Below, one piece after another: positions 1,748 to 64,000 of a DNA stretch of 64,000 nt. Made by a program: the position numbers and the translations under genes. Origin of the DNA: Dicyema japonicum (lineage: Eukaryota > Animalia > Dicyemida). The DNA lies in assembly GCA_011109175.1 (NCBI GenBank), contig RDEW01000029.1:406158-470157 (forward strand), in the 5' to 3' direction. Numbering within the stretch: position 1 is the first letter of the stretch; each line of letters starts with the position of its first letter. The notes below the pieces were generated by a model. It saw only the letters and a list, made by a program, of their open reading frames with translations. It searched no databases and was not told the DNA's origin.

Positions 1748-1965
1748 ATGAGTGGTTGTGTGGATGATAATCTATCTGATTGTAGTAAAATATCTAATAA
1801 ATAGTACTATTTGAACTTTCTGAATTACTAAATACGGGACTTAATAGGGACACGTTGAATGTATGTATACAGTTGCTTGACTCGGGTGTTAATCCTGAAA
1901 CTCTTGCTGAGGTCGTCCAGGAATTACGGAAAGAACCCGATAAAGAAGTAAACTTTTTTATTTAA
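1748..1965 (+). CDS. MZT1: Mitotic-spindle organizing protein 1 (MOZART1/GIP), ~60 aa
   Basis: ATG at 1748 and a 23-nt intron (1782-1804) give MSGCVDDNLSDLLFELSELLNTGLNRDTLNVCIQLLDSGVNPETLAEVVQELRKE, matching the MZT1 signature LNTGL...GVNPE.L..V..ELR. A possible second intron (1948-1971) would move the stop slightly. Not in the ORF track. Confidence 0.92.
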
Positions 1966-2079
1966 AATTAGAAATAAAATTTGTTTAATATTTTTTAGTT
2001 TTCTATTTGTTTTGTTATTTAACATGATTTACTTTTACGGAAAACCCAATTAATCAATACGAATTTTATCCTTAAACGT

Positions 2080-2137
2080 GGCGTCATGCCTGTTGTTGTG
2101 GTGGCGCTCAGTGCGGCTTTTGCATGGAAGAGAACCG
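2080..2137 (+). ncRNA. Candidate HDV-like ribozyme leader, copy 1 (degenerate)
   Basis: P1 GGCGTC/GGCGCT, P4 TGC-7nt-GCA, and J4/2-like TGGAAGA. The 5' strand of P2 appears deleted. Homologous to 6719-6780 and 63456-63515. Confidence 0.4.
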
Positions 2138-2214
2138 TTCGACTTTCCCTACCTTTCTGCGATCTTCAGACGGGTAGCTTACCAATTCCCCAGTTTTCTC
2201 TCTACTACTTCTGT

Positions 2215-2238
2215 GATGTAGAACCTAATCCGGGACCC
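2215..2238 (+). other. 2A-like (StopGo) motif DVEPNPGP upstream of APE
   Basis: gat gta gaa cct aat ccg gga ccc = D-V-E-P-N-P-G-P, in frame with the APE start. Confidence 0.8.
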
Positions 2239-3479
2239 AACTGCACGTTGAGTATTCCACAACTAAATGTAAATGGAATCCGCAATAAAGTATTGGAATT
2301 ACGATCCCTCTTATCCGATTTGAGAGTGGACATTGCCCTCATCCAAGAATCGAAGTTTTCTATAAAGTCCCCAACACCATGTTTTCTTGGATGTTGTGTA
2401 CTTCGCAGGGACCAAACAAGAAGTTTCGGAGGAGGATTATTGACGATCGTTAAGGATGGACTTAAATTCACTGATGTCACCCCTTCTGTATTTTATCTCT
2501 TCGAAGGGGATCTGGTCAAGTACTACTTCCTACATCCCCAACCTATTGAGCCTGTGTGGACTAAAGGATCTGCTACTATGCGGAGACCTAAACGCGAAAA
2601 ATCCACTCTGGCTCCAGACTCAATCAGTCGACAGTCGCGGCGAATACATCCTTTCCCTGATCAATGATCTGACTATCCTTAATGATCCGGACACCCACAC
2701 AAAAACTCCGTCCCGGAAAAGGAACAGTCCGACATCCCCGCACCTGTCTCTCTGCTCTCCTTTTATGGCTGGATGTATTTCATGGAATTTTCGTTATGGT
2801 TTCTCAAGCGACCATAACCCCATTGTGTTGAGACTTAGAAGGCCTATTTGTTCACCGTGTTGTTCTACAAAGTTCAAAAATTACTTGAAAGCCGACTGGC
2901 AAGGTTTCAGGACGTATGTGGACAATAGTCTCCTTGACCTTACTATGGTTAATTGCACAGTAGAGGAGACGGCCAAGATTCTGTCCGCTATCATTCTGAA
3001 AGCTGATAAACTATTTATACCTGTCGCCTCTTACAAGAAGTTCAATCCAAGATTATCATCACAAATTGTGTCACTCATCAAGAAACGAGATGCGCTGAAG
3101 AGGAATAGAACACAGACCAATAACTCCTTATACTCCATACGTTCATTGAATACCAAATTATCTGAGCTTATCCGAACTAACAACAGACTCAAATTGAGTC
3201 GCCTAGTCGGACGACTATGTGACAAAAACTCTTGTGCCACATTTTGAAAAGCGCTAAGAAGGAAAAACCCTACCTACTACCAATGATCAGGACACCATGT
3301 TTTGGTCCTATGCGGACGACCTAATTATCGCTGCAAGAAATAAATCTCCTTTCATGGCTGTAGCAACTGTTCAGATACACCTAAACCTAATTTGTGACTG
3401 GCTATCTGCAAATACGTGATTAGTTAGTTTGTTTAAGCGTGATCTCTGGTGATTTTATTATTATTAATAGCAATATCCG

Positions 3480-4020
3480 CGGAACCATAAAAATTAACTA
3501 ATTTGAGATTTTACTTTTACCATGCATCTCTGGATACGCCCTGCAATACATGGCCGACTAAAAATTAACACATAATACTTGGAGAATATGGACGCTATGA
3601 TATCTCGAATAATAGTAGGAGGATCCACATGCGCAATAAGATGTGAAGAAACCAGAAAAACACCAAGTTTATTACAACCTGTGTACGAATAATGATTTGG
3701 TTCCTTGGATGTCAAACCTCGACGCCAAAAGAGTCAGATAAATGTTTCAATCTTCTTCCATTCAGATTGGTTGTACCACACCCAAAAGCAACATGTTTTG
3801 AATTAAGATCTCCAACCAAATAGAGTAGTCAATAAAAAACTGGCTGATACTGTCCACACAATTATAAGAATCTTCGAATACATTGCCTTGATGGTAATCC
3901 ACACATCGTCACAGCAAAAGTCAACAGAGGTAAATTCACAACCAGTATTCCGTATGACTTGGGGTTTTAGAGTGCATTGATGTCGACGATAAAAAAGACG
4001 TACACGTGCCGGCAACAGCT
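3480..4020 (-). mobile_element. Jockey/I-like APE remnant (paralog of 7540-7910)
   Basis: Near-collinear DNA similarity to 7560-7900. Translation includes KEPNHYSY and NSKHV motifs. Confidence 0.6.
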
Positions 4021-4464
4021 ACTTCCTTCCATCTTATATCTACAGACGAAAACCCTCTAGGATGAAATCTTCTCCTTCTCTGATTTAAGTCTCGTTAACA
4101 ACGATAATATCAGCCACCTAGACTTTCAACAGTAATGAAAGTTCATCATGCCTTTTTCGAATGGATCTGGCAGTCACCAGCTTGGTATAACATTAGACTT
4201 CAACCAGCATATAAAGTATGTTATAAACCATAGAACATATGAAACAAGTCATCAATAGAGACTGTAGTGGTACATCTTTTAGGCAACAAAGAATATCTAT
4301 GCTGCTAAATAAATTGTTACTAATTATGCCTGTCAAGCATATTTACAGTTCTCTTAACCTGGAAATCAAAAAAAATACAGAATATTGTCTTACGGATTTC
4401 ATCATCTAGACGGTGTATGTTAAGAGAGATGACGTACTCTCTTGCCAAAGAAAGTCTCAGAGGA

Positions 4465-5050
4465 AACGAACCTAAAGCTATTTGATTCCTTGTACAACTG
4501 GAACCTTTAGATCTCCACAAATAAAACTCGAAATAATAAACCTTTCTCTCAGTCTGAATAATAAGTATTTGAATTGGCAAAAAATGGGTTAATGTTTTAT
4601 TTTTTTGAGGCAATGAACCTAAATCAATTTGATTCCTTGTACAACTGCAACCTTATATAAGACTCGACAGAATAAACCATTCTCTCAGTCTGAATGGAAA
4701 GTATTTGAATTCACAAAAAATGGATTAATGTTTCATTTCTTTGATTTAATGAACCTAAAGCCATTTGAATCCTTATACAACTGGAACATTTAGATCTCGA
4801 CTGTCCAAACATAGGACATGTCAAAATAAACCTTTCTCTCAGTCTGAATGGAAAATATTTGAATTGACAAAAAATGGGTTAATGTTTTATTTTTTTAGAT
4901 AACGAACCTAGATCCATTTGATTTCTTGTACAACTGGAACCTATAGATCTCGACTGTCCAAATATAAGACTCGACAAAATAAACATCTCTCTCAGTCTAA
5001 ATGGAAAGTGTTTGAATTCGCAAAAAATTAGGTCATTGTTTTATTTTTTG
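4465..5050. repeat. Diverged tandem repeat, about 4 units of ~135-155 bp
   Basis: Units begin gaaccta(a)a at ~4470, 4615, 4751 and 4904. They share ttccttgtacaactggaacc, ctctcagtctgaatggaaa and caaaaaatgggttaatgtttt. Confidence 0.85.
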
Positions 5051-5740
5051 ACATAGTTACAGATCTGCTTTTTCATACTAGAAAAGCTGAAAACGTTTAG
5101 GGATCAATTTGTCCTCGGCCATTCGCAGTAGAAACTTCGGGGCTTATGCTTCGCCCCGATTTCGTTTAAGAGTTCGAGTCTGGTCGTACCAGTCATCAGA
5201 GATGCTATCCGAGAAATTGGAATCGCAATCTCTTCTGGTTGGGATATCCTCTAGAGCGGCATTGGTTTCGTGAACGCCTCGGAATTGCCATCGTTCGCGA
5301 CAATGCTCACTGTCTCTTGCTACTGCTGTCCGATTTGTAATAATAAATTTTTGATACTAAAAATATATTTGTCTAATCCATCGTTTCTAAGTGCCAAGAA
5401 TGTGAGATTCCAAGGAAAATCTAGAATATTCAACCACTTAAGTTCCAAATGAACGAATGAACGACTCTATTAATCAGGGAATGAAAGGTTGGGGTAGTTT
5501 ATTAAAGTCTTGCCTCTAGTCATGGACAATCCGCTAGAGTCCTTCTTCTCCATAGTTATCCAGATTTGCAAGTGGGGTCCAAACGAGGGATCCAGGAGTC
5601 CAGTCAAACGTTGACTCCCAAAGTCTTAAATAGTGATTCTACATAATGGTTAAATTATATTATATAGTTTGTGTTAGACACAGATGCCCTATTTATAACA
5701 AATATTCCAATCTTAATGAGTAAGCCTGTTTAAATGAAAG

Positions 5741-6430
5741 TTAATTATTATCATTATTTGTATAATTATTTTTGAAGATTGCACATATTTGAATGATCTA
5801 AAATATATAATTATCATAAACTATTGAAAATGAGCATACATAGGAAACAAATAATATTTGTCCACCATGTACTACTGTAATACGCTTAAAAGTACGTTCA
5901 CAAAGCTAAGTAATTTATAAATCATTACCACACCCACTTCATCTTCCAGAAATACAAATTTACAATTTAACTATAAATAATAATTACAATAACTGCATTT
6001 TCAATAAATTTAGGCTTATTTGATTCAAATATATAATCAATTAACCATTCTCTAATGTGGATTGCTGAGAAGATCACAATTATGGTAACATTGAATATCA
6101 AAATAAAAAATGAAATATCAAAAGCTAAAAATATAATAATTTACAACAGTTATATTTATCGGTTTAGTAATTTTCCAAATCCTTACAATTCCAAGTGTCG
6201 TCACGGGAATATAGAAAGTAGCAGTAATCAAGATACATGAAACTGAAACCCAAAAAAAGATTGGCGAATCAGTATCATCATAATTATTGATATATGCATT
6301 TATGAAGAACCCACCTCCAACAAATAGTCCAATAGAAGTTCCCTAACAATTAAAGTTATCATACAGATAAAAATATAGTTAAAATTATTGTATTTGCTAT
6401 AAACACGAATCGTTCAAATAGTATAGCCAT
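5741..6430 (-). CDS. Four-TM, tetraspanin-like membrane protein (~190 aa, 5 micro-introns); one apparent 1-nt frameshift in a homopolymer near 6100
   Basis: ATG at 6430. Five GT-AG introns of 22-24 nt give MAILFERFVFIANTIILTIFLS-GTSIGLFVGGGFF...IFFWVSVSCILITATFYIPV...FNVTIIVIFSAIH...LNCKF..LCERTF..GQILFVSYVCSFSIIIQICAIF, with the stop at 5741-5743. Hydrophobic segments flank a two-Cys loop. No CCG motif. Confidence 0.7.
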
Positions 6431-6627
6431 TAATTAGAACACTTCATAAGTCTTTATTATATATTTGGTTAACCTTTGTAAATAATATTTAATAATAAAA
6501 TTATAATATTTATTTTATATTTTATTAACACTACTTCTATTTTGGTTGAGTTGGTGTCTCAATAGCACAAAGTCTTAATCACATATGAGGCTATCCGAAG
6601 AGTTTACCGTTCTATCGTTTAATGTCA

Positions 6628-6960
6628 TTAGACGCGTGGCGTTATGTGGTGCTGCGTGGTTAATCGGTTGAAGTTTTCTGATTGCTTGTCTCTTCATCTT
6701 CTCTCTTCCTATTAGAGTGGCGTCATGTGATCCACCTGGCTAGGTGACGCTTAGTGCCAGGCCGGCATGAAAAAGAATCATTTGCTTTCCCCACTCTACT
6801 GGAGGGGATTCCACAACTGCATGTATTGGACGTCTTATCTTTTATGCTGATTCCGGATGGAATCTGTTTCTGTAGAAGTGGAAACTAGATACAATAATTA
6901 ATTGTTTACTTTAACTTCTTTCGCGGTGCATCCGGGGTTAATAAATAAATAAAAAATAAA
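6628..6960 (+). mobile_element. Short non-autonomous derivative of the I/Ingi-like LINE (RIME/NARTc-like)
   Basis: Contains the LINE 5' leader (6719-6796) and the LINE 3' end cttctttcgcggtgcatccggggttaataaa, compared with ctttctttctcggtgttccggggttattaaa at the 49.8-kb LINE end (minus strand). Candidate TSD TAATGTCA at 6620-6627 and 6961-6968. Confidence 0.6.
6719..6780 (+). ncRNA. Candidate HDV-like ribozyme leader, copy 2
   Basis: GGCGTC-ATG-TGATCC-ACC-TGGCTA-GGT-GACGCT-TAG-TGC(caggccg)GCA-TGAAAAA-GAATCA. P1, P2, P3 and P4 can all pair in HDV order. The catalytic-C position is T. Confidence 0.55.
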
Positions 6961-7539
6961 TAATGTCAGAGGCTTGAAATATATCTACAAACGAATATGC
7001 CAAGAATACTTACAGTGCCATTATTGGATGCTTAAGTGTGGACTATTTGAGTTACATAATGATTACCGATTTATCCTCCTACGATCAGAACTTTACCACT
7101 ATGGAGAGGGTTCGCTATTCACAAGAGTTATTTGAATTCAATCTAAAAGTTTTATTACATGAACGATGGATGATAGTCTCGTGTGTGGCACAGGCGGGAA
7201 CTTAATTATTTATTTGAATCATTTGTTCCTATTATAGACCAATACACTTTCCGAGGAACCATATCAGCTATCGGTCCCCTCAGGCAGAACACACACTTTA
7301 TTTTAAGCAGAGAACAGTTATCATAGCTAATCGATTAGGGAGAATCGAGAAAAGCTATTCACTTTTTTGTTTTCTTTTTCTTGGGTGTGTGGGCTATTTA
7401 GACGATCCGGTTTGCTTTCATAGCACTCACACCATGCAACAATATAGACATCGATAAAGAACATATCCGTCATAAAAGTCCTGTAATGACTGACATTATT
7501 AGCATTAAATTTCATAAAACCCCGCAATACATGGTAGAC

Positions 7540-16503: not shown

Positions 16504-17083
16504 ATTAAATATACTATTGTAGATAAGGCGACTGAAAAAAAAGTTGGGGATAGAATAAACTTTAAAAAGTGGCTCTTCAATTTTTTAATTGCTAAAAACC
16601 AAAAATTGGCTCTTTGGCTTAGAAGGTTGCCGACCACTGGGCTAGGGGATCCTTCTGGGTACTTGAGACTGAAATAGCATGACGGCAGGAGACTGTATCC
16701 TCGTATGTAAATGTTTAATGGTTCACTTTGGAGGAACATTAAATGCCCTCTAGGCATTACTAATAATTACAAAATTGGTGAGCCACATAGCGCCACAAAT
16801 AAATTTAAATAAATTTTTAGCAATGTGCATCGAAAAACCTAATGTTTGTTCCAAAGGATTTCTCTGTTAGATGTCAGGGGAAACATCCATTCTATCAGCT
16901 GGATTATTTTAAAGTCTTGTTCTGTAATAAAATTTTTTTTAATTAAAATTACATTTTGAAATATTCAGATTAAAGTGTGATCAAAAAATTATAAGATGCT
17001 ACTGACTCGGATCATTTAACTTGTCCTGAATAACCGATTACTTGACAAAATCACTTAATCTCCAATGAGAAAACAATAGTCAG

Positions 17084-25936: not shown

Positions 25937-26529
25937 TTACTATATAAAAAATAAGTACTGAAAACGATCTCTGAATTGCACTAGAAAACAAAAAGCCATA
26001 TTTCGAAGAATTAATTAAAACTAAAAGGTAGGAAAAGTCTCAGGAACTTAACTAATTTTTTTGCTACCTGCGTTACCTATCGCATGAGATTACATGGATG
26101 ACATAAAGGAAAGGAGAAAGAGAGCTTTTCAGTCGCTCCTATGTGAACGGAAGCTACACGTTAGCCGTGACACCTACCTGTCCATTTTCAAGGGAGTTGT
26201 TCTTCCTAGCCTACTTTATGGGTGCGAGGGGTGGTTTTTTTTCCGAAAAGGGAGAAAATCTTATCCCTCCTAGAGAAGACTAGGAAAGCTCTCCTTAAAC
26301 AAGAAACTGAAAGACTGTCTAAGCGTTTTTCAGTCTTTTTCAACTTTTTTCTCCTAAGAATCATAATGATATAGTGTGGAGTTTTTTTATTTAAAAATAA
26401 TAAATTTTTTAATGACTAGAAATAAAAAAATAGTAATAAATTTAGTTCCAAATCGAGGTTTTCATTCAAAAGGAATAAAAATAGTAATAAATTCAGTTCC
26501 AAATCGAGGTTTTTTTAGAAAGGGTTGGA

Positions 26530-26735
26530 CGAGTGACGCCGTCATCAGTGGATACTCACTGCGGAACTGGATTGTCTAGAAAGGACACTCATACAAGAAA
26601 AAGAAAAAAGAAGTGAAGATCATTCCTTGGTTCTACGATTAGTTAAAATTAACTGTTCTTTACTTAAATAAAGTGTGTGTCCTGCCTATGCGGAGCTATA
26701 AATACTATGGCTCTCGTGAAAAGGCTTTAAAAAAA
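26530..26735 (+). mobile_element. Same SINE family, 5'-truncated
   Basis: gacgagtgacgccgtcatcagtggatactc...ggctctcgtgaaaaggc. Confidence 0.8.
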
Positions 26736-41700: not shown

Positions 41701-41834
41701 TTTTTGTCTTATAAAAAATCTTTTAATTTTTGTAATTTATTTTATTTATTAAAACCAAATATCATCGACAAATTAAATAACTACCACTTCGTTATGCCGC
41801 CTGAGATAAGAGCTATTCAGTATTCTCCCACACC

Positions 41835-42030
41835 TCATCAGTGGATACTCACTGCGGAACTGGATTGTCTAGAAAAAACCACAGAAAAAGAAAAAAAAGA
41901 AGTCAAGATAATTCCTTGGTTCTACGATTAGTTAAAATTAACTGCTCTTTATTTAAATAAAGTGTGTGTCCTGCCTATACGGAGCTATAAATATTATGGC
42001 TCTCGTGAAAAGGCCGTTATTATTATTTGT
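41835..42030 (+). mobile_element. SINE 3' part, inserted in the Tigger element
   Basis: tcatcagtggatactcactgcgg...ggctctcgtgaaaaggcc(tat)n, followed by the same flank as in the array copies. Confidence 0.8.
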
Positions 42031-43759: not shown

Positions 43760-45050
43760 AACTACCCTAAACACTGACCCTAACTAAAAACCCTAACCCT
43801 TAAAACCCTAAACACTGACCCTAGCTAAAAACCTTAAACATTAACCCTAACCCTTAAAACCTAACCAAATACCCTCAAAGTGTAAATTATTAAACATAAT
43901 TTATTAATTAAATTATTTACCGTTTTCGATCACTTCGAATCGTGACCTGTGAATATTTTCATCATCATTGTTATTGAGAAAACAATTATCTCCCTCAATT
44001 TTGGTAACTTCATAGATGGTACAGTCAAGCTCATCGTACAGTGTCATTGTACGATGAGCTGGATTTTCGCCATGATCTCCTTTTTTAAAGACCTTGTCAC
44101 CAACTTTTAAAGTTTCTTCGTCGTTTCTTCATTAATTTTTCAATCATTTTTGGGGCTGTTACTTTGGTATATATTCGTGCCTTATCCCTTGCTTCATCCA
44201 TTTCATAAGACAGAAAATTCGACAAATCCTCCGGAATAGCTTCCTGTGGATACTTACATCCCACAAAAATGAAAAATGACATTTGTTTCGTTGTCTCGTG
44301 TATCGACTTGTTGTAATCAAAAACAATTTTTTTAATTAAGAAAATAACTCCCAAACTCTCCACTGGAAGCGAATGTAAAAGAAATCCATTTTTTATTGAT
44401 TGGTTAAAGCTAAATTTATAATTTCTTTTTTTATTTCTCTAGTTGACCTTGTATCCATGAAGCACGCGGTCTAGCAAAGACATATTTGATCCGTAGCTCC
44501 ATTAACATGTCAGTCATCAATTTATTTTTAAATTCTATTCCGTTGTCCGTGTGTAGTAATAACGGGGGGCCATATGTATAAAAACTTTTTGAAAAGTTTT
44601 AACTACTTCCTTTGAATTTTTTGAGTAGTTTCGACCATACCAAGTTTGCTGAAACAATCAACAACTGTCAAAAGTTACAAAAAATAAATGAAAAAAATAC
44701 CCATGAATAACCCAAGTTTTTGTCTGAATAACGTCGCAAATCGATCAGATCGGCTATATATCCGTCTCGTGCGAATTTTGCAACAATTGGTGTGTGTTAT
44801 CGGAGGTTTTGTTTCCAAAAGCCTCTTAGACAGACAAAATGGACACCGCTTTACAATATCTCCAATTTCGTTCTTTGTCACATTGTAGTACAGCTTTTTC
44901 AAAATACTAAAAACTCTGTTCCTGCCCATGTGAGATTTGTTGTGTTCAGACATAGACTAAAAACTTAAAGATCGAAAGTTAATCGTTTTAGCTCTAGTTC
45001 GTCGTTTGCAAAAAATCGTAATTTATTATTTGTTTCCTACATGAGCAATT
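43760..45050 (-). mobile_element. Ginger-like (Gypsy-integrase-type) transposase pseudogene 1 with two decayed micro-introns
   Basis: HNKSHMGR..CPFC (HHCC), DLIDLR, TVVDCFSK, HTDNGIEF and QGQLE. Introns at 44675-44700 (acceptor AA) and 44410-44434 (donor AT). Confidence 0.8.
43765..43870 (+). repeat. Degenerate telomere-like (CCCTAA) cluster downstream of Ginger 1
   Basis: ccctaaac..ccctaactaaaaaccctaacccttaaaaccctaaac..ccctaacccttaa. Confidence 0.7.
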
Positions 45051-49782: not shown

Positions 49783-51660
49783 ATTTTAATAACCCCGGGA
49801 ACACCGAGAAAGAAAGACAAAAAATCAAACAGTTAGGTGATCCCAGTCCTCGCAATCAATTGTGCCATTCGACGTGTGTGATCTTCCATCGTCCCCACTA
49901 CTTTCTGGAAGAACCTTCTCTCGGTCATGCAGAGGAATCCTGATCTGGGAGGGAAATTTCTTATCCAATCGGTTTTCTCTTCCCATGGAAAGGATCGGGC
50001 GAAGCGGATTTTCATCTTCCTCACAGACGCGAAAAATCCGGAGCCACGACTACGGATCTTAACTTCCATGAGTAGTGGTGAGTCGACTGTTGATCCATTA
50101 CGTGGGCAAAGCATACTAATTGTTTTCTGGTGTATCGAGTTGACTCTTTGGACCAAAGACTCCGATGGCGCGAATCTCCATGCAACGGAGGCATACTCAA
50201 CGGCAGGCGCGATTGTTTGTTGGTATAGGGTAGAAACGTTAAAATCCATTTTCCTCGTAATCTTTCGGACAAGGGCGCGTAAAACGTTAACTTTCTGGAG
50301 GCCCCTGGTAATCATGTCTTTAGCGTGGGAGTTGAAATTGAGTAGACTGTCGTACTTGACTCCAAGGACAGTGGGGACATTGTCACTGGAATCCGAGTGG
50401 GACCAATAAAGATACTCGGTTCATCCTTAGAACGACGGTCCGAAGTGAAAGTGGAACAGATGGATTTGGTTGCAGAAATCGTAAGTCGATTGCCAACAAT
50501 CCAATCGTGGAGACTGTTCAATTTGCCTGAGTTTAAAGGATGCGACTTGCGTCGAGCGGTTCCGTATTGCAATGACTACATCGTCTGCGTAGGATAATAG
50601 CAGGGAATCTTCGTCTCCATCATTAGGTAGGTCGTGTAGGAATAGGTTGAATAGAATTGGTAAAAGTGGAAACCCCTGGGGTACCCCGTTCGGTAGTAAT
50701 CATGATCTATATCTGAGATCACCACTGACTACTCTTTCACGTCTTCCAGACAAAAAGTTAGCCAGCCATAATTTCATATTCGGACGAATATTAGTAGAAA
50801 ATATTTTTCCAACCAGGATTTTCCTCGAAACAGTGTCAAAGGCTTTGTTGATGTCAATAGAAACGAAGATTGTGCGTTTGTGAGGCAGGGGATGGGTGTT
50901 AAACCGTCTGCAATGAACTGCGATAGGGTAGCCAAGTATGTAGCGGTGGACCTACAGCGGAGGAAACCATGTTAAAATATAGGACGTGGAAGATACGGAA
51001 TAATGACTGATAATACAAGTTTCTCCATAATTTTTGACAGTGTGCAGGTAACGGAAATAGGCCTGTAGGAGGCATGTTCAGTCTCTGGTTTCCCAGCTTT
51101 CAATATCGGTCTGATGATAGAATTCTTCCAAATCTTAGGAATAATATTATAGTTAATGGACAGGTTGTATATTTGCGTGAGGTAGCCAATTGAGTAGTGG
51201 CTTAGGTGTTTTAGGTGAATAGAAGATACTTTGTCAGGCCCGCACGCCCGTGAGCTCTTTAATCTGGTGATCACATCCAAGACTTGGTCATCTCTGAATA
51301 GTTCGTGATAAGGTTCCTTCTTCGGTTTATGGGCATGCACCTTAATGTCTAGGTGTTTTGAGAATGGTTTGAAGCTAATTCCAGCGTAATGTTTCATAAG
51401 GGAGTTAGGATTTAGGTGGCATAAGTGTTCAAAAGAAGACTTTCCGGTTCCGTCTGCATCATCCAGCTCCGACTTGACTTGTTTAAGAGTTTTCCAGAAA
51501 TGTCGGGATGTACTTTTCCTGTCGAGGTGGTTAACTAAGATGCTGCCATCTCTTGTCCTTGTGTTCTTTTATGCTCTAAGAGATCCTTATTTGGTTTTCT
51601 TGTTAGTTGTCTGAAGGCTGTCAAAGACTTCAGTCCAACAGATGGCATCTCTTCAGCCGG
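49783..51660 (-). mobile_element. I/Ingi-like LINE, RT + intact 3' end (array copy A)
   Basis: RACGPDKVS, YRPIS, SIDINKAFDTV, GVPQG and YADD, ending GIT* plus the family 3' UTR. Related copies at 53890-55405, 57063-58850 and 61082-63540. Confidence 0.9.
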
Positions 51661-51999
51661 TCTCATTCTGACCTGAACTATTTTTGGTAGATATCCGTAA
51701 ATATTCTAGACTATGCATAGAAGGAATTAACATAAATCCAATACATCCAGTAGGTTTTGTAAACTTTAATGTTCAATATATGCAAAGAAAATAATATCCG
51801 AGTAAGCATTAGTGACCTCATTGAGTCTAGAGTAGATGGAATGAGAAAATCAGATATTTTATAGTAGCACCTAGTAATAAAAATGATAGACCTGTTAGAT
51901 TGAAATGTTTCATTGATGAAAGATTAAACAAAAAGCTGTTTTTAGAAAATTCGTGAGTTTATAAAAAAATTAAGCAGGACATTTTCTAATAACAGTCTT

Positions 52000-52550
52000 A
52001 ACCTATTCAACTACCTTCCTCATTGATCGAGGCATAGCAGTTGACGACACATTAGTTTCTCCGTTATCAAAAAACATGCTACGATCCTGAAGTAGACACA
52101 GCTTTTCCTCGGTTATAGGAGAGTGACTTCTATGCACTAGCCATCCAGAGGATTCTGCAATATTCAATTCTGTGTCTTTAAACACTGAAATAAAATAGTG
52201 TGCTGAGGCTTCTTCTTAATTTTTCCCGATAGATATTTTTTTATCAATTTCGACATGTTGTATTTCCATCAATTTTGACTTTGTCAAGTCTTTCGCACTT
52301 TCAATGTTGTACTTTTGGGAAATGAATTCTACGATAGTGGTGTTTTTTTAATTCCCGCTATTCTTAGGCATTAATTTGCCTTATGTTCCAAGTCACCATA
52401 TAATTGGAGGATCATTCGTTTGCTTTGTTACTGACAGACTCACGACCTATTCCAAATTTATTTCTTGGTAAAGTCATTCTTTGTTAGCCGGTTGTAAGAA
52501 ATCTGCGGATGTTTTTATCGATCTGTTCAAATTCTGGAGGCTCTATATCA
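52000..52550 (-). mobile_element. R4/Dong-like fragment (post-RT region)
   Basis: RMTLPRNKFGIG; IAESSGWLVH..EEKLCLLQDRSMFF. Repeated in later units. Confidence 0.6.
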
Positions 52551-52552
52551 AT

Positions 52553-52630
52553 CAGTGGTTCCCAACCTGGGTTCCGAGGAACCCCAGGGTTCGACGTAGA
52601 CAGTTTTGGGGTTCCGGGAAATTTATTATA
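52553..52630 (+). mobile_element. hAT (Buster-like) left end fragment; also at 55722 and 59741
   Basis: cagtggttcccaacctgggttccgaggaacccc is typical of hAT termini. Confidence 0.7.
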
Positions 52631-52642
52631 AATTATTTAATA

Positions 52643-53887
52643 CAGTGCAACCCCGAATTGGGGTAATCTTTCCCAACTTTCAGGTTTTCCACAAAAAAGA
52701 GGGTTTTCCTTAAATTTGGGTCTCCCCAGTTCGACTTCCTACCTTAATAACATAACCAAGACGGATAATTACAATTATTATTTTTTAATAAAAAAATCTG
52801 TTAATTTTAATCGAGTGTTTTTTTCCCCGGGTGGCATAGTGGTTAGGTGTTCGGGCTTAAGTGGCTTAGATTACGGGTTCGAATCTCGCTTCTGTTCACC
52901 TAGTAGAAGGTTCCACGTATCTACGATGCAGGTTTGACGGTGAGGCCCGTCATCAGTGGATACTCACGGCGGAACTGGATTGTCTAGAAAAAACCAACAC
53001 ACAAGAAAATAAAAAAAAGAAGTCAAGAAAATTCCTTGGTTTTTACGATTAGTTAAAATTAACGTGTTGCCCTGCCTATAAGGAGCTATAAATATTATGG
53101 CTCTCGTGAAAAGGCCATTATTATTTGTTTTTTTCGCATGGACTCATATGGCAGAACATAATATTTGCTTTGAATCTATTGACGACCATGGAGGAACTAA
53201 TCGAAAAAAACAAAAATGGACACCAATGCCAAAAAATGCTCATCCGCAACGTACTTGTGTAGAATCAAGGGATCAAACCGAGAAAGCCTTGATCCAATTC
53301 GTCGCGATCACTTAGTTTAGTCTTTTTGGTTTAACAGTGGTCTTTGGAATTGATTAAATTAAAATTAAATCTGTATAAATCAAAGACATTTTCCTGAGTC
53401 TCTTGTTTAATAACATCTAGCAGCATTGTAAAAACGCATTCCGCATTATTTATAACTTGTTGATCATCCAAATGTTCCAGAAATTGATAGCTGCAGTCCT
53501 CTTCATCACTACTATGATCATCCCAGAAGATCTCCAAAATCGCATTTTCCACAATATCCGAATCAATTAGACTTTCTCCGGTGCCTCTTTTTCCCGACAT
53601 TCATATTCCATAGCCTTTTCAAAGCAATGTCGTATTGAAGTTTCTGTAATCTCGCCCATACCAATTTCGAACATGAAATAGCATCTATTTGAGCTACAGG
53701 ATTTTTATCATAGATAATCGTTTTCATTATCCAATTATTGAAACGATTCTAAAATGCATGTATTATTCCTTGGCCACATGGCTAAATAAGGTAGTTGTGT
53801 TTCCTGGAAAAAATATTATCTCAACGTTTGAATATTGGGCAGAAACAGCATTGCATTGTCAATAAATAATGTTATTTTACTCTCCCC
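52643..53887 (-). mobile_element. Tigger/pogo 3' part with TIR and inserted SINE; repeated in each unit
   Basis: TA + cagtgcaaccccgaattgggg is the reverse complement of the TIR ending at 36293. The body matches 35410-36270. Confidence 0.85.
52826..53125 (+). mobile_element. tRNA-derived SINE, full-length, 10-bp TSD; copies at 55995-56296 and 60014-60315
   Basis: A box TGGCATAGTGG and B box GGTTCGAATCT. TSD TGTTTTTTTC at 52816-52825 and 53126-53135. Confidence 0.9.
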
Positions 53888-56800
53888 ACTACGTCTGTTA
53901 TCTTCCATCGTCCCCACTACTTTCTGGAAGAGCCTTCTCTCGGTCTTGCAGAAGAATCCGATCAGGGAAAGAAATTTCTTATCCAATCGGTTTTCTCTTC
54001 CCATGGAAAGGATCGGGCGAAGCGGATTTTCATCTTCCTCACAGACGCGAAGAAATCCGGAGCCACGACTACGGATCTTAACTTCCATGAGTAGTGGATC
54101 AACTGTTGATCCATTACGTGGGCAAAGCATACTGATTGTTTTCTGGTGTATCGAGTTGACTCTTTGGACCATAGACTCCGATAGCGCGAATCTCCATGCA
54201 ACGGAGGCATACTCAACGGCAGGCGCGATTGTTTGTTGGTAGAGGGTAGAAACGAAAATCCATGTTCCTCGTGGTCTCGGACAAGGCGCGTAAAACGTTA
54301 ACTTTCTGGAGGCCCCTGGTAATCATGTCTTTAGCGTGGGAGTTGAAATTGAGTAGACTGTCGTACTTGACTCCAAGGACAGTGGGGACTTGTCACTGGA
54401 ATCCGAGTGGGACCAATAAAATACTCGTTCATCCTTAGAACGACGGTCCGAAGTGAAAGTGGAACAGATGAACTTGGTTGCAGAAATCGTAAGTCGATTG
54501 CCAACAATCCAATCGTGGAGAGTGTTCAATTTTGCCTGAGTTTAAAGGATGCGACTTGTGTCGAGCGGTTCCGTATTGCAATGACTACATCGTCTGCGTA
54601 GGATAATAGCAGGGAATCTTCGTCTCCATCATTAGGTAGGTCGTGTAAGAATAAGTTGAATAGAATTGGTGAAAGTGGAACCCTGGAGTACCCCGTTCGG
54701 TAGTAATCGTGATCTAGATCTGAGATCACCATTGACTACTCTTCCACGTCTTCCAGACAAAAACTTGGCCAGCCATAATTTCACATTCGGACGAATATTA
54801 GTAGAAAATATTTTTCCAACTAAGATTTTCCTCGAAACAGTGTCGAAAGCTTTATTGATGTCAATAGAAACCAATATTGTGCGTTTGTGAGGCGGAGGAT
54901 GGGTGTTAAAACCGTCGGCAATGAACTGCGATAAAGTTGCCAAGTATGTAGCGGTGGACCTACCGCGGAGGAAATAATGTTGAAATATAGGACGTGGAAG
55001 ATACGGAATAATGACTAATAATACAAGTTTCTCCATAATTTTTGACAGTGTGCTGGTAACAGAAATAGGCCTGCAGGAGGCAGGTTCTGTCTCTGTTTTC
55101 CAGCTTCAATATCGGTCTGATGATAGAATTCTTCCAAATCTTGGGAATAATATTATAGTTAATAGACAGGTTGTATATTTGCGTGAGATAGCCAATTGCG
55201 TAGTGGCTTAGGTGTTTTAGGTGAATAGAAGATACTTTGTCAGGCCCGCACGCCCGTGAGCTCTTTAATCTGGTGATCACATCCAAGACTTGGTCATCTG
55301 TGAATAGTTCGTGGTAAGGTTCCTTCTTCGGTTTATGGCATGCACCTTAATGTCCAGGTGTTTCGAGAATGGTTTGAAGCTAATTCCAGCGTAATGTTTC
55401 ATAAGTTTTTATCAATTTCGACATATTGTATTTCCATCAATTTTGACTTTGTCAAGTCTTTCGCACTTTCAATGTTGTACTTTTGGGAAATGAATTCTAC
55501 GATAGTGGTGTTTTTTTAATTCCCGCTATTCTTAGGCATTAATTTGCCTTATGTTCCAAGTCACCATATAATTGGAGGATCATTTGTTCTGCTTTGTTAC
55601 TGACAGACTCACGACCTATTCCAAATTTATTTCTTGGTAAAGTCATTCTTTGTTAGCCGGTTGTAAGAAATCTGCGGATGTTTTTATCGATCTGTTCAAA
55701 TTCTGGAGGCTCTATATCAATCAGTGGTTCCCAACCTGGGTTCCGAGGAACCCCAGGGTTCGACGTAGACAGTTTTGGGGTTCCGGGAAATTTATTATAA
55801 ATTATTTAATACAGTGTAACCCCGAATTGGGGTAATCTTTCCCAACTTTCAGGTTTTCCACAAAAAAGAGGGTTTTCCTTAAATTTGGGTCTCCCCAGTT
55901 CGACTTCCTACCTTAATAACATAACCAAGACGGATAATTACAATTATTATTTTTTAATAAAAAAATCTGTTAATTTTAATCGAGTGTTTTTTTCCCCGGG
56001 TGGCATAGTGGTTAGGTGTTCGGGCTTAAGTGGCTTAGATTACGGGTTCGAATCTCGCTTCTGTTCACCTAGTAGAAGGTTCCACGTATCTACGATGCAG
56101 GTTTGACGAGTGAGGCCGTCATCAGTGGATACTCACGGCGGAACTGGATTGTCTAGAAAAAACCAACACACAAGAAAAATAAAAAAAAGAAGTCAAGAAA
56201 ATTCCTTGGTTTTTACGATTAGTTAAAATTAACGTGTGTGCCCTGCCTATAAGGAGCTATAAATATTATGGCTCTCGTGAAAAGGCCATTATTATTTGTT
56301 TTTTTCGCATGGACTCATATGGCAGAACATAATATTTGCTTTGAATCTATTGACGACCATGGAGGAACTAATCGAAAAAAACAAAAATGGACACCAATGC
56401 CAAAAAATGCTCATCCGCAACGTACTTGTGTAGAATCAAGGAATCAACACCGAGAAAGCCTTGATCCAATTCGTCGCGATCACTTAGTTTAGTCTTTTTG
56501 GTTTAACAGTGGTCTTTGGAATTGATTAAATTAAAATTAAATCTGTATAAATCAAAGACATTTTCCTGAGTCTCTTGTTTAATAACATCTAGCAGCATTG
56601 TAAAAACGCATTCCGCATTATTTATAACTTGTTGATCATCCAAATGTTCCAGAAATTGATAGCTGCAGTCCTCTTCATCACTACTATGATCATCCCAGAA
56701 GATCTCCAAAATCGCATTTTCCACAATATCCGAATCAATTAGACTTTCTCCGGTGCCTCTTTTTCCCGACATTCATATTCCATAGCCTTTTCAAAGCAAT

Positions 56801-59800
56801 GTCGTATTGAAGTTTCTGTAATCTCGCCCCATACCAATTTCGAACATGAAATAGCATCTATTTGAGCTACAGGATTTTTATCATAGATAATCGTTTTCAT
56901 TATCCAATTATTGAAACGATTCTAAAATGCATGTATTATTCCTTGGCCACATGGCTAAAATAAGGTAGTTGTGTTTCCTGGAAAAAATATTATCTCAACG
57001 TTTGAATATTGGGCAGAAACAGCATTGCATTGTCAATAAATAATGTTATTTTACTCTCCCCACTACGTCTGTTATCTTCCATCGTCCCCACTACTTTCTG
57101 GAAGAGCCTTCTCTCGGTCTTGCAGAAGAATCCGATCAGGGAAAGAAATTTCTTATCCAATCGGTTTTCTCTTCCCATGGAAAGGATCGGGCGAAGCGGA
57201 TTTTCATCTTCCTCACAGACGCGAAGAAATCCGGAGCCACGACTACGGATCTTAACTTCCATGAGTAGTGGGTCGACTGTTGATCCATTACGTGGGCAAA
57301 GCATACTGATTGTTTTCTGGTGTATCGAGTTGACTCTTTGGACCATAGACTCCGATAGCGCGAATCTCCATGCAACGGAGGCATACTCAACGGCAGGCGC
57401 GATTGTTTGTTGGTAGAGGGTAGAAACGGAAAAATCCATGTTCATCGTGGTCTTTCGGACAAGGGCGCGTAAAACGTTAACTTTCTGGAGGCCCCTGGTA
57501 ATCATGTCTTTAGCGTGGGAGTTGAAATTGAGTAGACTGTCGTACTTGACTCCAAGGACAGTGGGGACATTGTCACTGGAATCCGAGTGGGACCAATAAA
57601 GATACTCGGTTCATCCTTAGAACGACGGTCCGAAGTGAAAGTGGAACAGATGGATTTGGTTGCAGAAATCGTAAGTCGATTGCCAACAATCCAATCGTGG
57701 AGACTGTTCAATTTGCCTGAGTTTAAAGGATGCGACTTGCGTCGAGCGGTTCCGTATTGCAATGACTACATCGTCTGCGTAGGATAATAGCAGGGAATCT
57801 TCGTCTCCATCATTAGGTAGGTCGTGTAGGAATAGGTTGAATAGAATTGGTAAAAGTGGAAACCCCTGGGGTACCCCGTTCGGTAGTAATCATGATCTAT
57901 ATCTGAGATCACCACAGACTACTCTTTCACGTCTTCCAGACAAAAAGTTAGCCAGCCATAATTTCATATTCGGACGAATATTAGTAGAAAATATTTTTCC
58001 AACCAGGATTTTCCTCGAAACAGTGTCAAAGGCTTTGTTGATATCAATAGAAACGAAGATTGTGCGTTTGTGAGGCAGGGGATGGGTGTTAAACCGTCTG
58101 CAATGAACTGCGATAGGGTAGCCAAGTATGTAGCGGTGGACCTACAGCGGAGGAAACCATGTTAAAATATAGGACGTGGAAGATACGGAATAATGACTGA
58201 TAATACAAGTTTCTCCATAATTTTTGACAGTGTACAGTAACGGAAATAGGCCTGTAGGAGGCATGTTCAGTCTCTGGTTTCCCAGCTTTCAATATCGGTC
58301 TGATGATAGAATTCTTCCAAATCTTAGGAATAATATTATAGTTAATGGACAGGTTGTATATTTGCGTGAGGTAGCCAATTGAGTAGTGGCTTAGGTGTTT
58401 TAGGTGAATAGAAGATACTTTGTCAGGCCCGCACGCCCGTGAGCTCTTTAATCTGGTGATCACATCCAAGACTTGGTCATCTGTGAATAGTTCGTGATAA
58501 GGTTCCTTCTTCGGTTTATGGGCATGCACCTTAATGTCAGGTTTTGAGAATGGTTTGAAGCTAATTCCAGCGTAATGTTTCATAAGGGAGTTAGGATTTA
58601 GGTGGCATAAGTGTTCAAAAGAAGACTTTCCGGTTCCGTCTGCATCATCCAGCTCCGACTTGACTTGTTTAAGAGTTTCCAGAAATTGTCGGGATGTACT
58701 TTTCCTGTCGAGGTGGTTAACTAAGATGCTGCCATCTCTTGTCCTTGTGTTCTTTTATGCTCTAAGAGATCCTTATTTGGTTTTCTTGTTAGTTGTCTGA
58801 AGGCTGTCAAAGACTTCAGGTCCAACAGATGGCATCTCTTCAGCCGGTCTCATTCTGACCTGAACTATTTTTGGTAGATATCCGTAAATATTCTAGACTA
58901 TGCATAGAAGGAATTAACATAAATCCAATACATCCAGTAGGTTTTGTAAACTTTAATGTTCAATATATGCAAAGAAAATAATATCCGAGTAAGCATTAGT
59001 GACCTCATTGAGTCTAGAGTAGATGGAATGAGAAAATCAGATATTTTATAGTAGCACCTAGTAATAAAAATGATAGTCCTGTTAGATTGAAATGTTTCAT
59101 TGATGAAAGATTAAACAAAAAGCTGTTTTTAGAAAATTCGTGAGTTTATAAAAAAATTAAGCAGGACATTTTCTAATAACAGTCTTAACCTATTCAACTA
59201 CCTTCCTCATTGATCGAGGCATAGCAGTTGACGACACATTAGTTTCTCCGTTATCAAAAAACATGCTACGATCCGGAAGTAGACACAGCTTTTCGTCGGT
59301 TATAGGAGAGTGACTTCTATGCACTAGCCATCCAGAGGATTCTGCAATATTCAATTCTGTGTCTTTAAACACTGAAATAAAATAGTGTGCTGAGGCTTCT
59401 TCTTAATTTTTCCCGATAGATATTTTTTTATCAATTTCGACATGTTGTATTTCCATCAATTTTGACTTTGTCAAGTCTTTCGCACTTTCAATGTTGTACT
59501 TTTGGGAAATGAATTTTACGATAGTGGTGTTTTTTTAATTCCCGCTATTCTTAGGCATTAATTTGCCTTATGTTCCAAGTCACCATATAATTGGAGGATC
59601 ATTCGTTTTGCTTTGTTACTGACAGACTCACGACCTATTCCAAATTTATTTCTTGGTAAAGTCATTCTTTGTTAGCCGGTTTTAAGAAATCTGCGGATGT
59701 TTTTATCGATCTGTTCAAATTCTGGAGGCTCTATATCAATCAGTGGTTCCCAACCTGGGTTCCGAGGAACCCCAGGGTTCGACGTAGACAGTTTTGGGGT

Positions 59801-62800
59801 TCCGGGAAATTTATTATAAATTATTTAATACAGTGCAACCCCGAATTGGGGTAATCTTTCCCAACTTTCAGGTTTTCCACAAAAAAGAGGGTTTTCCTTA
59901 AATTTGGGTCTCCCCAGTTCGACTTCCTACCTTAATAACATAACCAAGACGGATAATTACAATTATTATTTTTTAATAAAAAAATCTGTTAATTTTAATC
60001 GAGTGTTTTTTTCCCCGGGTGGCATAGTGGTTAGGTGTTCGGGCTTAAGTGGCTTAGATTACGGGTTCGAATCTCGCTTCTGTTCACCTAGTAGAAGGTT
60101 CCACGTATCTACGATGCAGGTTTGACGAGTGAGGCCGTCATCAGTGGATACTCACGGCGGAACTGGATTGTCTAGAAAAAACCAACACACAAGAAAAATA
60201 AAAAAAAGAAGTCAAGAAAATTCCTTGGTTTTTACGATTAGTTAAAATTAACGTGTGTGCCCTGCCTATAAGGAGCTATAAATATTATGGCTCTCGTGAA
60301 AAGGCCATTATTATTTGTTTTTTTCGCATGGACTCATATGGCAGAACATAATATTTGCTTTGAATCTATTGACGACCATGGAGGAACTAATCGAAAAAAA
60401 CAAAAATGGACACCAATGCCAAAAAATGCTCATCCGCAACGTACTTGTGTAGAATCAAGGAATCAACACCGAGAAAGCCTTGATCCAATTCGTCGCGATC
60501 ACTTAGTTTAGTCTTTTTGGTTTAACAGTGGTCTTTGGAATTGATTAAATTAAAATTAAATCTGTATAAATCAAAGACATTTTCCTGAGTCTCTTGTTTA
60601 ATAACATCTAGCAGCATTGTAAAAACGCATTCCGCATTATTTATAACTTGTTGATCATCCAAATGTTCCAGAAATTGATAGCTGCAGTCCTCTTCATCAC
60701 TACTATGATCATCCCAGAAGATCTCCAAAATCGCATTTTCCACAATATCCGAATCAATTAGACTTTCTCCGGTGCCTCTTTTTCCCGACATTCATATTCC
60801 ATAGCCTTTTCAAAGCAATGTCGTATTGAAGTTTCTGTAATCTCGCCCCATACCAATTTCGAACATGAAATAGCATCTATTTGAGCTACAGGATTTTTAT
60901 CATAGATAATCGTTTTCATTATCCAATTATTGAAACGATTCTAAAATGCATGTATTATTCCTTGGCCACATGGCTAAAATAAGGTAGTTGTGTTTCCTGG
61001 AAAAAATATTATCTCAACGTTTGAATATTGGGCAGAAACAGCATTGCATTGTCAATAAATAATGTTATTTTACTCTCCCCACTACGTCTGTTATCTTCCA
61101 TCGTCCCCACTACTTTCTGGAAGAGCCTTCTCTCGGTCTTGCAGAAGAATCCGATCAGGGAAAGAAATTTCTTATCCAATCGGTTTTCTCTTCCCATGGA
61201 AAGGATCGGGCGAAGCGGATTTTCATCTTCCTCACAGACGCGAAGAAATCCGGAGCCACGACTACGGATCTTAACTTCCATGAGTAGTGGGTCGACTGTT
61301 GATCCATTACGTGGGCAAAGCATACTGATTGTTTTCTGGTGTATCGAGTTGACTCTTTGGACCATAGACTCCGATAGCGCGAATCTCCATGCAACGGAGG
61401 CATACTCAACGGCAGGCGCGATTGTTTGTTGGTAGAGGGTAGAAACGGAAAAATCCATGTTCTCGTGGTCTTTCGGACAAGGGCGCGTAAAACGTTAACT
61501 TTCTGGAGGCCCCTGGTAATCATGTCTTTAGCGTGGGAGTTGAAATTGAGTAGACTGTCGTACTTGACTCCAAGGACAGTGGGGACATTGTCACTGGAAT
61601 CCGAGTGGGACCAATAAAGATACTCGGTTCATCCTTAGAACGACGGTCCGAAGTGAAAGTGGAACAGATGGATTTGGTTGCAGAAATCGTAAGTCGATTG
61701 CCAACAATCCAATCGTGGAGACTGTTCAATTTGCCTGAGTTTAAAGGATGCGACTTGCGTCGAGCGGTTCCGTATTGCAATGACTACATCGTCTGCGTAG
61801 GATAATAGCAGGGAATCTTCGTCTCCATCATTAGGTAGGTCGTGTAGGAATAGGTTGAATAGAATTGGTAAAAGTGGAAACCCCTGGGGTACCCCGTTCG
61901 GTAGTAATCATGATCTATATCTGAGATCACCACTGACTACTCTTCCACGTCTTCCAGACAAAAAGTTGGCCAGCCATAATTTCATATTCGGACGAATATT
62001 AGTAGAAAATATTTTTCCAACCAGGATTTTCCTCGAAACAGTGTCAAAGGCTTTGTTGATGTCAATAGAAACGAAGATTGTGCGTTTGTGAGGCAGGGGA
62101 TGGGTGTTAAAACCGTCTGCAATGAACTGCGATAGGGTAGCCAAGTATGTAGCGGTGGACCTACAGCGGAGGAAACCATGTTAAAATATAGGACGTGGAA
62201 GATACGGAATAATGACTGATAATACAAGTTTCTCCATAATTTTTGACAGTGTGCTGGTAACGGAAATAGGCCTGTAGGAGGCATGTTCAGTCTCTGGTTT
62301 CCCAGCTTTCAATATCGGTCTGATGATAGAATTCTTCCAAATCTTAGGAATAATATTATAGTTAATGGACAGGTTGTATATTTGCGTGAGGTAGCCAATT
62401 GAGTAGTGGCTTAGGTGTTTTAGGTGAATAGAAGATACTTTGTCAGGCCCGCACGCCCGTGAGCTCTTTAATCTGGTGATCACATCCAAGACTTGGTCAT
62501 CTGTGAATAGTTCGTGATAAGGTTCCTTCTTCGGTTTATGGGCATGCACCTTTCTGAATGGCAGCGCTGATAATTTCTGCGGCCTCATCAATAGATCGTA
62601 TTAAGGAGGATAATCTCCGGGCCAAGAATTTATCGACAAGGTTACTGAAACCAGACCAGTCAACCTTCGTATAATCCTTGAATCTTTTTGAATCGGCGGG
62701 CCGTCTCCTGTATCGTCGAAGACCTCTCAATTTTAGATAGATTGGATTGTGGTAAAAGACGTTCCAGGAAATGAGTCCAGCCAGAGAACGTGAGCATAGT

Positions 62801-63393
62801 GTTAAGTCGGGGGATGTGTAGCTATCAGTCATCCTTAATGGGGTTCTCGTATGTGAGTTAAGGTTGTTCAGTATATTCAGGTCAGGAAGATAATTTGCAA
62901 TGAATTCTCATCGGTTATCAGAGGATTGGGAAGTGAGCCAAACTGGATGTCGTGCATTAAGATCCCCACATAATAGTAGATTTTTTTATGTTGAAATGCG
63001 TGATAAATCAGGGGTGTAAGATGACGGACACGATCCTTGTGGAGGAATATATAAATTAGACAAATGGATCCAAAAGGACGGGAATAACTCGATTTTGACA
63101 GTAATCTGCTCCAAAGTCTTGTCGATGCCAAGAAGAACTGAGGTTCGTTGAGTTGTATCCATAAAAGGAATGTCGTTCTTTATAATAGTAAGTAGTCCTC
63201 CTCCGCGTCCTCCCTGACGATCTTTACGGATCACTGTGTATCCGGGAAAAGAGGGTGTTGGTATGGAGGGAGATAGCTTGGACTCCTGTATTAAAGCGAG
63301 GTCAGCCTCATTTTCGCGGATGAGTGCCCGGAGTTCAAAGATTTTCTTCCTGATCTCATTCGTATTCAGTTGTATAATTGTAAAACTTCTCCA

Positions 63394-63429
63394 TGGACCA
63401 GGATTGGTTTCGACGTCTCCACATAGAAG
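63394..63429 (-). other. Canonical 2A (StopGo) motif LLCGDVETNPG-P
   Basis: ctt cta tgt gga gac gtc gaa acc aat cct ggt cca, immediately upstream of and in frame with APE. Confidence 0.9.
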
Positions 63430-63455
63430 ACCACCGGACGGTGGGGAGAAGCTGT

Positions 63456-63515
63456 TGGCTCTTTTCGTTCTTTTTTGGAATGGGTGATAACATTTCTGGT
63501 GAGCCACATGACACC
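63456..63515 (-). ncRNA. Candidate HDV-like ribozyme leader, copy 3 (retains the catalytic-C position; P1 and P3 partly decayed)
   Basis: GGTGTC-ATG-TGGCTC-ACC-AGAAAT-GTT-ATCACC-CA-TTC(caaaaaa)GAA-CGAAAA-GAGCCA. P2 TGGCTC/GAGCCA is a perfect 6 bp. Confidence 0.55.
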
Positions 63516-64000
63516 ACGCTAACGCCACGCTAACAACATTTCTCAGAATCACAGAATCGTTATAAATTTATAAACCAACATTGACATAATATAAAAGATA
63601 AATTGCTCCGTAGTTCATTTTAATAGATTACTTTCCAAGCATCTTTTGATTAAAAGTATATTTAAAAAAAAAATTATAGTTATTTTTTACTTCAATAAAG
63701 ACTTACTTCATGACAACTCTCCATTCTGACCAGAAATATTTTTGGTAGATATCCGTAAATATTCTAGACTATGCATAGAAGGAATTAACATAAATCCAAT
63801 ACATCCAGTAGGTTTTGTAAACTTTAATGTTCAATATATGCAAAGAAAATAATATCCGAGTAAGCATTAGTGACCTCATTGAATCTAGAGTAGATGGAAT
63901 GAGAAAATCAGATATTTTATAGTAGCACCTAGTAATAAAAATGATAGACCTGTTAGATTGAAATGTTTCATTGATGAAAGATTAAATAAAAAGCTGTTTT

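Follow-up and report, generated by a model that had tools for sequence, protein, structure and literature searches.

Three stretches of a 64,000-nt segment of the Dicyema japonicum genome (henceforth the window; positions refer to it unless another locus is named) appear to retain the remains of a nested double pseudoknot of the HDV (delta) type, and comparison with relatives from Octopus sinensis and from sequencing reads indicates that this fold is real. With some reserve, we favour the view that these leaders are decayed copies of an HDV-like ribozyme module of about 62 nt, which heads single-ORF LINEs encoding a 2A motif followed by an APE endonuclease and a reverse transcriptase (RT), and which has also been carried into an abundant short derivative of such LINEs. 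Intact members of the family would probably cleave themselves 5' of G1, the guanosine at the base of helix P1. One feature does not fit the textbook role of such a ribozyme, namely that G1 is offset from the true 5' end of the elements.

Leader copies in the window

The three leaders were found at the places originally predicted, with G1 at 2080 (+), 6719 (+) and 63515 (-). The motif GTGGYGTCATG, with at most one mismatch allowed, occurs five times in the window against 0.76 expected, and this number was reached by 0 of 100 shuffles. A chance match to the leader motif at 43738 is adjoined by degenerate CCCTAA-like repeats (…ccctaaacactgaccctaactaaaaaccctaaccc…) at 43760-43880 on the plus strand. 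Each full leader represents the start of a LINE, whose ORF contains a 2A motif directly 5' of the APE endonuclease and which also encodes an RT.

Copy 2 (6719-6780, +), read from the sequence with the help of a helix table, is a decayed HDV-type fold. P1 is formed by 6719-6724 with 6746-6751, the ATG follows at 6725-6727, P2 pairs 6728-6733 with 6775-6780 (five of six pairs), P3 pairs 6734-6736 with 6743-6745 around L3 (6737-6742), J1/4 occupies 6752-6754, P4 pairs 6755-6758 with 6764-6767, and J4/2 (6768-6774, TGAAAAA) opens with U rather than C, position 6768 being T. P1, P3 and P4 are thus well formed, and P2 contains a single C x A mismatch. The original prediction took this copy for the 5' leader of a LINE; this does not hold for the copy itself, which lies inside a short element that starts at 6628 (see below).

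Copy 1 (2080-2137, +), preceded by TTAAACGT at 2072-2079 (+), possesses none of the six P2 pairs, since six nucleotides that members of its family carry have been lost after 2088, and with them the 5' strand of this helix; its J4/2 (TGGAAGA) has U in place of C. The first ORF of this LINE (2086-2667, +) starts at the ATG inside the fold and contains the 2A motif DVEPNPGP (2215-2238, +), behind which comes the APE endonuclease. The element has suffered an internal deletion, and the YADD motif of its RT is found near position 3300.

Copy 3 (63456-63515, -) has a complete 6-bp P2, a 3-bp P4 and the junction J4/2 CGAAAA, and its gaps are found in P1 (four of six pairs) and P3 (two of three pairs). 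The 5' terminus of this LINE (63511-63533, -), read directly from the sequence as T[TAGCGTGGCGT][TAGCGTGGTGT], is an 11-nt tandem duplication of the first bases of the element, situated upstream of G1 and overlapping it. The ORF (62986-63552, -) comprises the 2A motif GDVETNPGP (63394-63420, -) and, behind it, the N-terminus of the APE domain; the ATG of the fold is one frame off this ORF, and RT-bearing tandem units lie downstream. LINE bodies are arranged head to tail on the minus strand from 49800 to 63700, as tandem units whose lengths are 4,019 and about 3,172 nt. The full 5' part, with leader copy 3, is confined to the last unit, and an unrelated 345-nt stretch takes its place in the others. 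Alignment of copy 3 to the neighbouring tandem units gave no clean empty site for its 5' end.

A fourth copy (16774-16796, -; GTGGCGCTATGTGGCTCACCA) is a stub that consists of the 5' strand of P1, the ATG and the 5' strands of P2 and P3. Its likeness to the other leaders ceases after the 5' strand of P3, i.e. after the first ~21 nt; it has no TTAGC upstream, and it is joined to a LINE body that starts at about residue 146 of the APE domain.

In a helix table built by hand within a script, all pair changes that had been claimed between copies 2 and 3 were recovered, namely C-G to U-A in P1, A-U to G-C and U-A to C-G in P2, and G-C to U-A in P4, as were the three J4/2 sequences given above and the partner of G1, which is U in copies 1 and 2 and C in copy 3. 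The HDV ribozyme likewise has a G1.U wobble, and its J4/2 is of the form C-N-R-A. The proposed common helix order stands for copies 2 and 3 and fails for copy 1 at the missing 5' strand of P2. In agreement with the suggestion that the window copies are degraded versions of the fold, all three appear to be non-functional relics: copy 1 has lost the 5' strand of P2 and the cytosine, copy 2 has lost the cytosine and has a mismatch in P2, and copy 3 has P1 and P3 broken.

Specificity of the searches

A relaxed HDV descriptor is far too unspecific in DNA so rich in A and T: it yields 155 (+) and 126 (-) non-overlapping matches in the window and matches about a quarter to a third of 200-nt shuffles, and only strict settings were therefore used as evidence. 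Pseudoknot-free folding gave z-scores from -1.2 to +1.1, which for a pseudoknot are uninformative. The delta-type models of Rfam matched neither the window copy nor the two octopus copies described below, either at the gathering threshold or at E <=10; this is weak evidence, because these models cannot encode pseudoknots and missed also the cleaner octopus copies. The window copies alone are therefore insufficient to separate the fold from chance, and it exceeds chance only once relatives are brought in. Another candidate, a ribozyme of the twister type like that of Schistosoma Perere-3, was rejected; the window contains no twister motif.

Relatives of the leaders

A protein search with the ORF of copy 3 retrieved about 1900 related APE proteins, and 66 of the 150 matches listed contain NPGP. 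Protein searches for copies from the same genome found none; the nearest proteins are at most 49% identical, which implies that the LINEs of this genome are absent from the protein collections. The matches include the annotated LINE-derived protein LOC115229065 of O. sinensis, whose gene starts at the ATG of a leader (L002:1496-1562) that is homologous in sequence to those of the window. This leader passes the strict descriptor, with a 6-bp P1 (GCGTCA/TGGCGC), a 7-bp P2 (GTGGTTC/GAACCAT), a 4-bp P4 (AUAC/GUAU), L3 UUUUCU, J1/4 CGG and J4/2 CUAAAAA; among 1000 dinucleotide shuffles, only 10 gave any match to it.

A second O. sinensis leader (L038:3088-3158, -), 7 kb from the first, was detected with a covariance model made from three leaders. 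It has a G1.U wobble, a 7-bp P1, L3 UUCUCGU, J1/4 GG, a 7-bp P4 and a cytosine in J4/2, and its frame is open into the 2A motif GDVEQNPGP. It falls outside the strict descriptor on account of a one-base spacer before P1' and an additional A before the J4/2 cytosine, and its fold was parsed by hand. The L3 of the genomic HDV ribozyme is UCCUCGC, from which the L3 of this leader differs at two of seven bases. The same covariance model recovered only the known copies in the window and no further ones in 36 metagenome loci.

Logan contigs from four runs of the organism of the window were placed on positions 1900-7100. Other members of the copy-1 family carry a 6-nt insert, CGGTTA or CGGTTC, after 2088, which pairs with GAACCG of copy 1; one contig of this family reads ...GTCATGCGGTTC. 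The relatives of copy 2 read ACGAAAAAGGATCA, in which both the C of J4/2 and a perfect P2 are restored. The original prediction explained the U at the catalytic position of copy 2 as a decayed C, and this is borne out by five of five independent read-derived strings from its relatives, which have ACGAAA(AA).

A distant relative, a full-length animal 2A-LINE with an ORF of 1061 aa from a Logan contig (L039), contains a very clean HDV-like motif at L039:351-416, with a 7-bp P1, an 8-bp P2 and J4/2 CAAA, the ATG of the ORF (408) lying across J4/2 and P2'. It has no sequence likeness to the window leaders and occupies the same place in the element; it passes the explicit descriptor, and its score was reached by 0 of 1000 shuffles. 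The distant 2A-LINEs L041-L043, as well as L001 and L040, gave no significant match to the descriptor.

Covariation and the conserved core

The sample is small, comprising five full leaders from two genomes together with consensus fragments from contigs. MAFFT and model-based alignments misplaced copy 1 and the second octopus copy, for which reason the pair table was constructed by hand. All five full leaders fit the order P1, J1/2, P2, P3, L3, P3', P1', J1/4, P4, J4/2, P2', copy 1 without the 5' strand of P2. Across five lineages, four of the six P2 pairs show two-sided changes: the copy-2 family has A-U for G-C and C-G for U-A, and C-G replaces U-A in the copy-1 family and also in copy 3. 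In P1, two to three of the six pairs are changed on both sides: copy 3 has U-A in place of C-G, and the second octopus copy has U-A in place of G-C and A-U in place of G.U. P3 (ACC/GGT) is conserved, and P4 is a hairpin in all five leaders with a different sequence in each.

Copy 3, both O. sinensis copies and L039 have the cytosine of J4/2, as do the five read-derived strings from relatives of copy 2; the focal copy at 6719-6780 and copy 1 have T in its place. A candidate P1.1 of two base pairs can be drawn in every copy, with bases and registers that vary (UG:CA or UG:UA in the window, U/C with GG in the octopus, GC:GC in L039). The L3/P1.1 core of the window families thus departs from the canonical CC:GG, and the UG:YA pairing proposed for them can be regarded as a consistent variant, next to the GG of the O. 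sinensis leaders and the GC:GC of L039. In copy 1 and in the two octopus elements, the ORF starts at the ATG of the fold.

Taken with the data on relatives, the claim of a conserved and covarying nested double pseudoknot in this LINE group is upheld. We judge the fold, of delta type, to be real from the sequences of the relatives, that is because of the cleaner octopus folds, the restoration of P2 and of the C, the covariation in P1 and P2, and the motif in L039.

The short element carrying copy 2

Copy 2 resides in a short non-autonomous element of 333 nt (6628-6960, +), a deletion derivative of a LINE, which is bounded by the target-site duplication (TSD) TAATGTCA (6620-6627 and 6961-6968, +). 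Its head (6628-6718, +) is 91 nt long and has a LINE-like start, TTAGACGCGTGGCGTTATGTGG, with no delta-type fold; within the leader-like beginning of this head (6628-6650, +), the motif GTGGCGTTATG occupies 6636-6646. Rfam recognises nothing in the head, and ARAGORN found no tRNA-like gene anywhere in the window, the head included. The head is followed by the 5' part of a LINE, comprising TTAGA-GT 5' of G1 and the fold, then by a remnant of the APE N-terminus from which the 2A region has been deleted, and the element ends in a 3' part with a tail of (TAAA)n type.

The summed depth of contigs is about 1.2 million over 6598-6945, against four to five thousand in the flanks, and in each run 25-30 contigs (6 in the small run X5) lose their likeness to the window before 6633, their flanks mostly ending in TTAGC. 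Because of this depth and of the contigs that diverge before 6633, the short element is a very abundant deletion derivative of a LINE, like NARTc or RIME. The LINE family of copy 1 is also present in many copies, as the depth rises from 593 to 39,909 (about 70-fold) at the bin that starts at 2074.

Element 5' ends and the predicted cut

The position of the element 5' ends relative to G1 had been set beforehand as a test of the ribozyme. The outcome is in part against it: the ends lie 6-10 nt upstream of G1 and not at it. The bases that precede G1 are TTAAAC-GT in copy 1, TTAAC-GT in another contig of its family and TTAGA-GT in copy 2; TTAGACGC-GT is found at the head of the short element, and in most of its relatives TTAGC closes the flank. 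In copy 3 TAGCGTGGYGT is duplicated at the 5' terminus, and O. sinensis has TTTAGCGC. TTAGC is missing in two copies, the stub at 16796 and the second octopus copy. This conservation of the upstream bases across independent insertions and across species places the start of the reverse-transcribed RNAs at (T)TAGC, which is 6-10 nt upstream of where the cut is predicted. G1 is thus at about +7 to +11 of the element, and the predicted cut falls neither at its first nucleotide nor upstream of it. The head and the body of the short element have about equal depth, which gives no sign of copies that begin at 6719; such copies are not common.

In the second octopus copy, the 15 nt directly 5' of G1 (L038:3159-3173, -; GGTTCACCTTCTCGT) repeat the fold's own P2-L3 segment (3132-3146). 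This repeat faintly hints at a template-switch scar from an RNA end at G1.

Proposed mechanism and alternative explanations

According to the mechanism that we propose, the 5' end of the LINE RNA would fold into P1, P2, P3, P1.1 and P4 as a nested double pseudoknot, with the LINE start codon between P1 and P2. A start codon in this position implies that the fold would be translated as a throw-away leader peptide, to be split from the enzyme by the 2A. Intact RNA would most likely cut itself 5' of G1 by means of the cytosine that opens J4/2, and the cut would free the LINE RNA from longer transcripts, leaving a 5'-OH RNA with the AUG 5-7 nt from its end. Since the RNAs copied into insertions began 6-10 nt 5' of G1, cutting would be at best partial, or dispensable for the template.

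The offset of G1 can also be accommodated if the knot, though real, has ceased to be a ribozyme in these families and is a delta-type descendant kept for another task, such as translation start at the buried AUG or binding of the LINE protein. This would explain why the knot is found some bases into the element and amid the short repeat, and why the template remains uncut. We consider this rather unlikely, though it agrees well with 5' ends that lie 6-10 nt upstream of G1 and are conserved there, with a fold that lies within a short element amplified to very high numbers, head and body being equally abundant, with the non-canonical L3/P1.1 core of the window families, and with a start codon that is always within the fold. 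A purely structural role, however, needs neither the J4/2 cytosine nor the G1.U or G1-C pair, both of which are kept in intact relatives and in family reads, and it does not account for the octopus leader at L038, with GG in J1/4 and an L3 near to that of HDV. That no RNA structure matters at all, and that an internal promoter and a start codon at the LINE 5' end were joined by eye with chance complementarity into helices, is in our estimate very improbable. It is true that the best conserved part is formed by the first ~20 bases (TTAGC..GTGGCGTCATGTGG), that these are found again at 6628, in the head that has no fold, and in the stub at 16796, and that neither the relaxed descriptor, very unspecific here, nor the unremarkable folding z-scores speak for a fold. 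Chance pairing would, however, hardly leave four of six P2 pairs and two to three P1 pairs changed on both sides and still paired across five lineages, nor a P4 hairpin preserved while its sequences are unrelated from copy to copy, nor, in an element without sequence likeness (L039), the same motif at the same place, which no shuffle out of 1000 equalled.

If the leaders are, as we prefer, decayed ribozymes, the location of G1 might even be deliberate, with a ribozyme placed inside the element as a switch. Uncut RNA initiated at the promoter would be the template for copying, which keeps its 5' terminus, and translation would proceed from the cut RNA, whose AUG is 6 nt from the 5'-OH end; in thousands of short dependants the module would then compete for the LINE machinery or recruit it. 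We regard this version as speculative and improbable.

Comparison with known ribozymes of LINEs

The occurrence of HDV-like ribozymes at LINE 5' ends, and their pairing with 2A in L1Tc/Ingi elements, are already well known (PMC3185411, PMC3383444, PMC3708506), and the order of ribozyme, 2A and APE-RT is an architecture familiar from L1Tc/Ingi. In L1Tc the HDV-like ribozyme is contained within the first 77 nt (PMC3185411), and 2A directly 5' of APE is known in elements of the Ingi clade, including one from a mollusc (PMC3708506). The closest counterpart is L1TcRz/Pr77 of the Trypanosoma cruzi elements L1Tc and NARTc (Ingi clade), with which the leaders described here share an HDV-like fold in the first ~77 nt, a single-ORF APE-RT LINE and an N-terminal 2A (PMC3185411, PMC3383444, PMC3708506), as well as a head that is common to the LINE and to a short non-autonomous derivative, as in L1Tc and NARTc. 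The same layout is found in the window, where the 2A motifs at 2215-2238 and 63394-63420 are followed by APE, and the folds end within ~75 nt of the element start. L1TcRz, however, cuts at +1, the transcription start, whereas here G1 lies 6-10 nt inside the element; here, too, the start codon is placed between P1 and P2, the fold of the short element stands behind a 91-nt head, and the elements, unlike L1Tc, are those of an animal and have a leader homologous to that of an O. sinensis LINE. With G1 offset from the element start, an AUG in J1/2, the UG:YA version of P1.1 and amplification inside a short dependant, the leaders amount to a minor variant of this known arrangement.

With the HDV-like ribozymes of R2, R4 and RTE the leaders have in common the helix order, the J4/2 cytosine, the basal G of P1 and a location at the 5' end of a LINE for the processing of co-transcripts (PMC3774820). 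These ribozymes differ in cutting at the junction or up to 36 nt upstream of it, never inside, they are not accompanied by 2A, and R2 is site-specific. In general, the proven LINE ribozymes (R2, R4, RTE, L1Tc) cut at the first base of the element or upstream of it, which frees the template of upstream sequence (PMC3774820, PMC3185411). The twister-variant of Schistosoma Perere-3 provides another example of a LINE headed by a small self-cleaving RNA, there with TSDs abutting the cleavage site (PMC8501958); it belongs, however, to another ribozyme class. The genomic HDV and CPEB3 ribozymes possess the same nested double pseudoknot, in contrast to which the leaders have no sequence homology to them, no Rfam match, a short P4 and, in the window, UG:YA in P1.1.

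A paper devoted to 2A in LINEs of animals is silent on ribozymes, and the literature searched contained no report of such ribozymes for octopus. If the leaders derive from a ribozyme, the pairing of a delta-type ribozyme with 2A would extend from trypanosome LINEs to animal LINEs that look cephalopod, and its presence in the latter suggests that this LINE group has had the arrangement for long or has acquired it repeatedly. By way of the short dependant element, a fold of ribozyme type has also been multiplied to thousands of copies.

Other repeats with leader-like hairpins

The window also contains copies of a tRNA-derived-looking SINE on the plus strand, at 26523-26609, 41816-41902, 52931-53017, 56100-56186 and 60119-60205, with a box-B-like sequence GGTTCGAATCTCG at 56046-56058. 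These copies include the stretch GGCCGTCATCAGTGGATACTCACGGCGG, in which CCGTC/GGCGG enclose a GTG/CAC hairpin and are followed by a second hairpin and a run of A; it has no partner for P2 and resembles the front half of the LINE leader.
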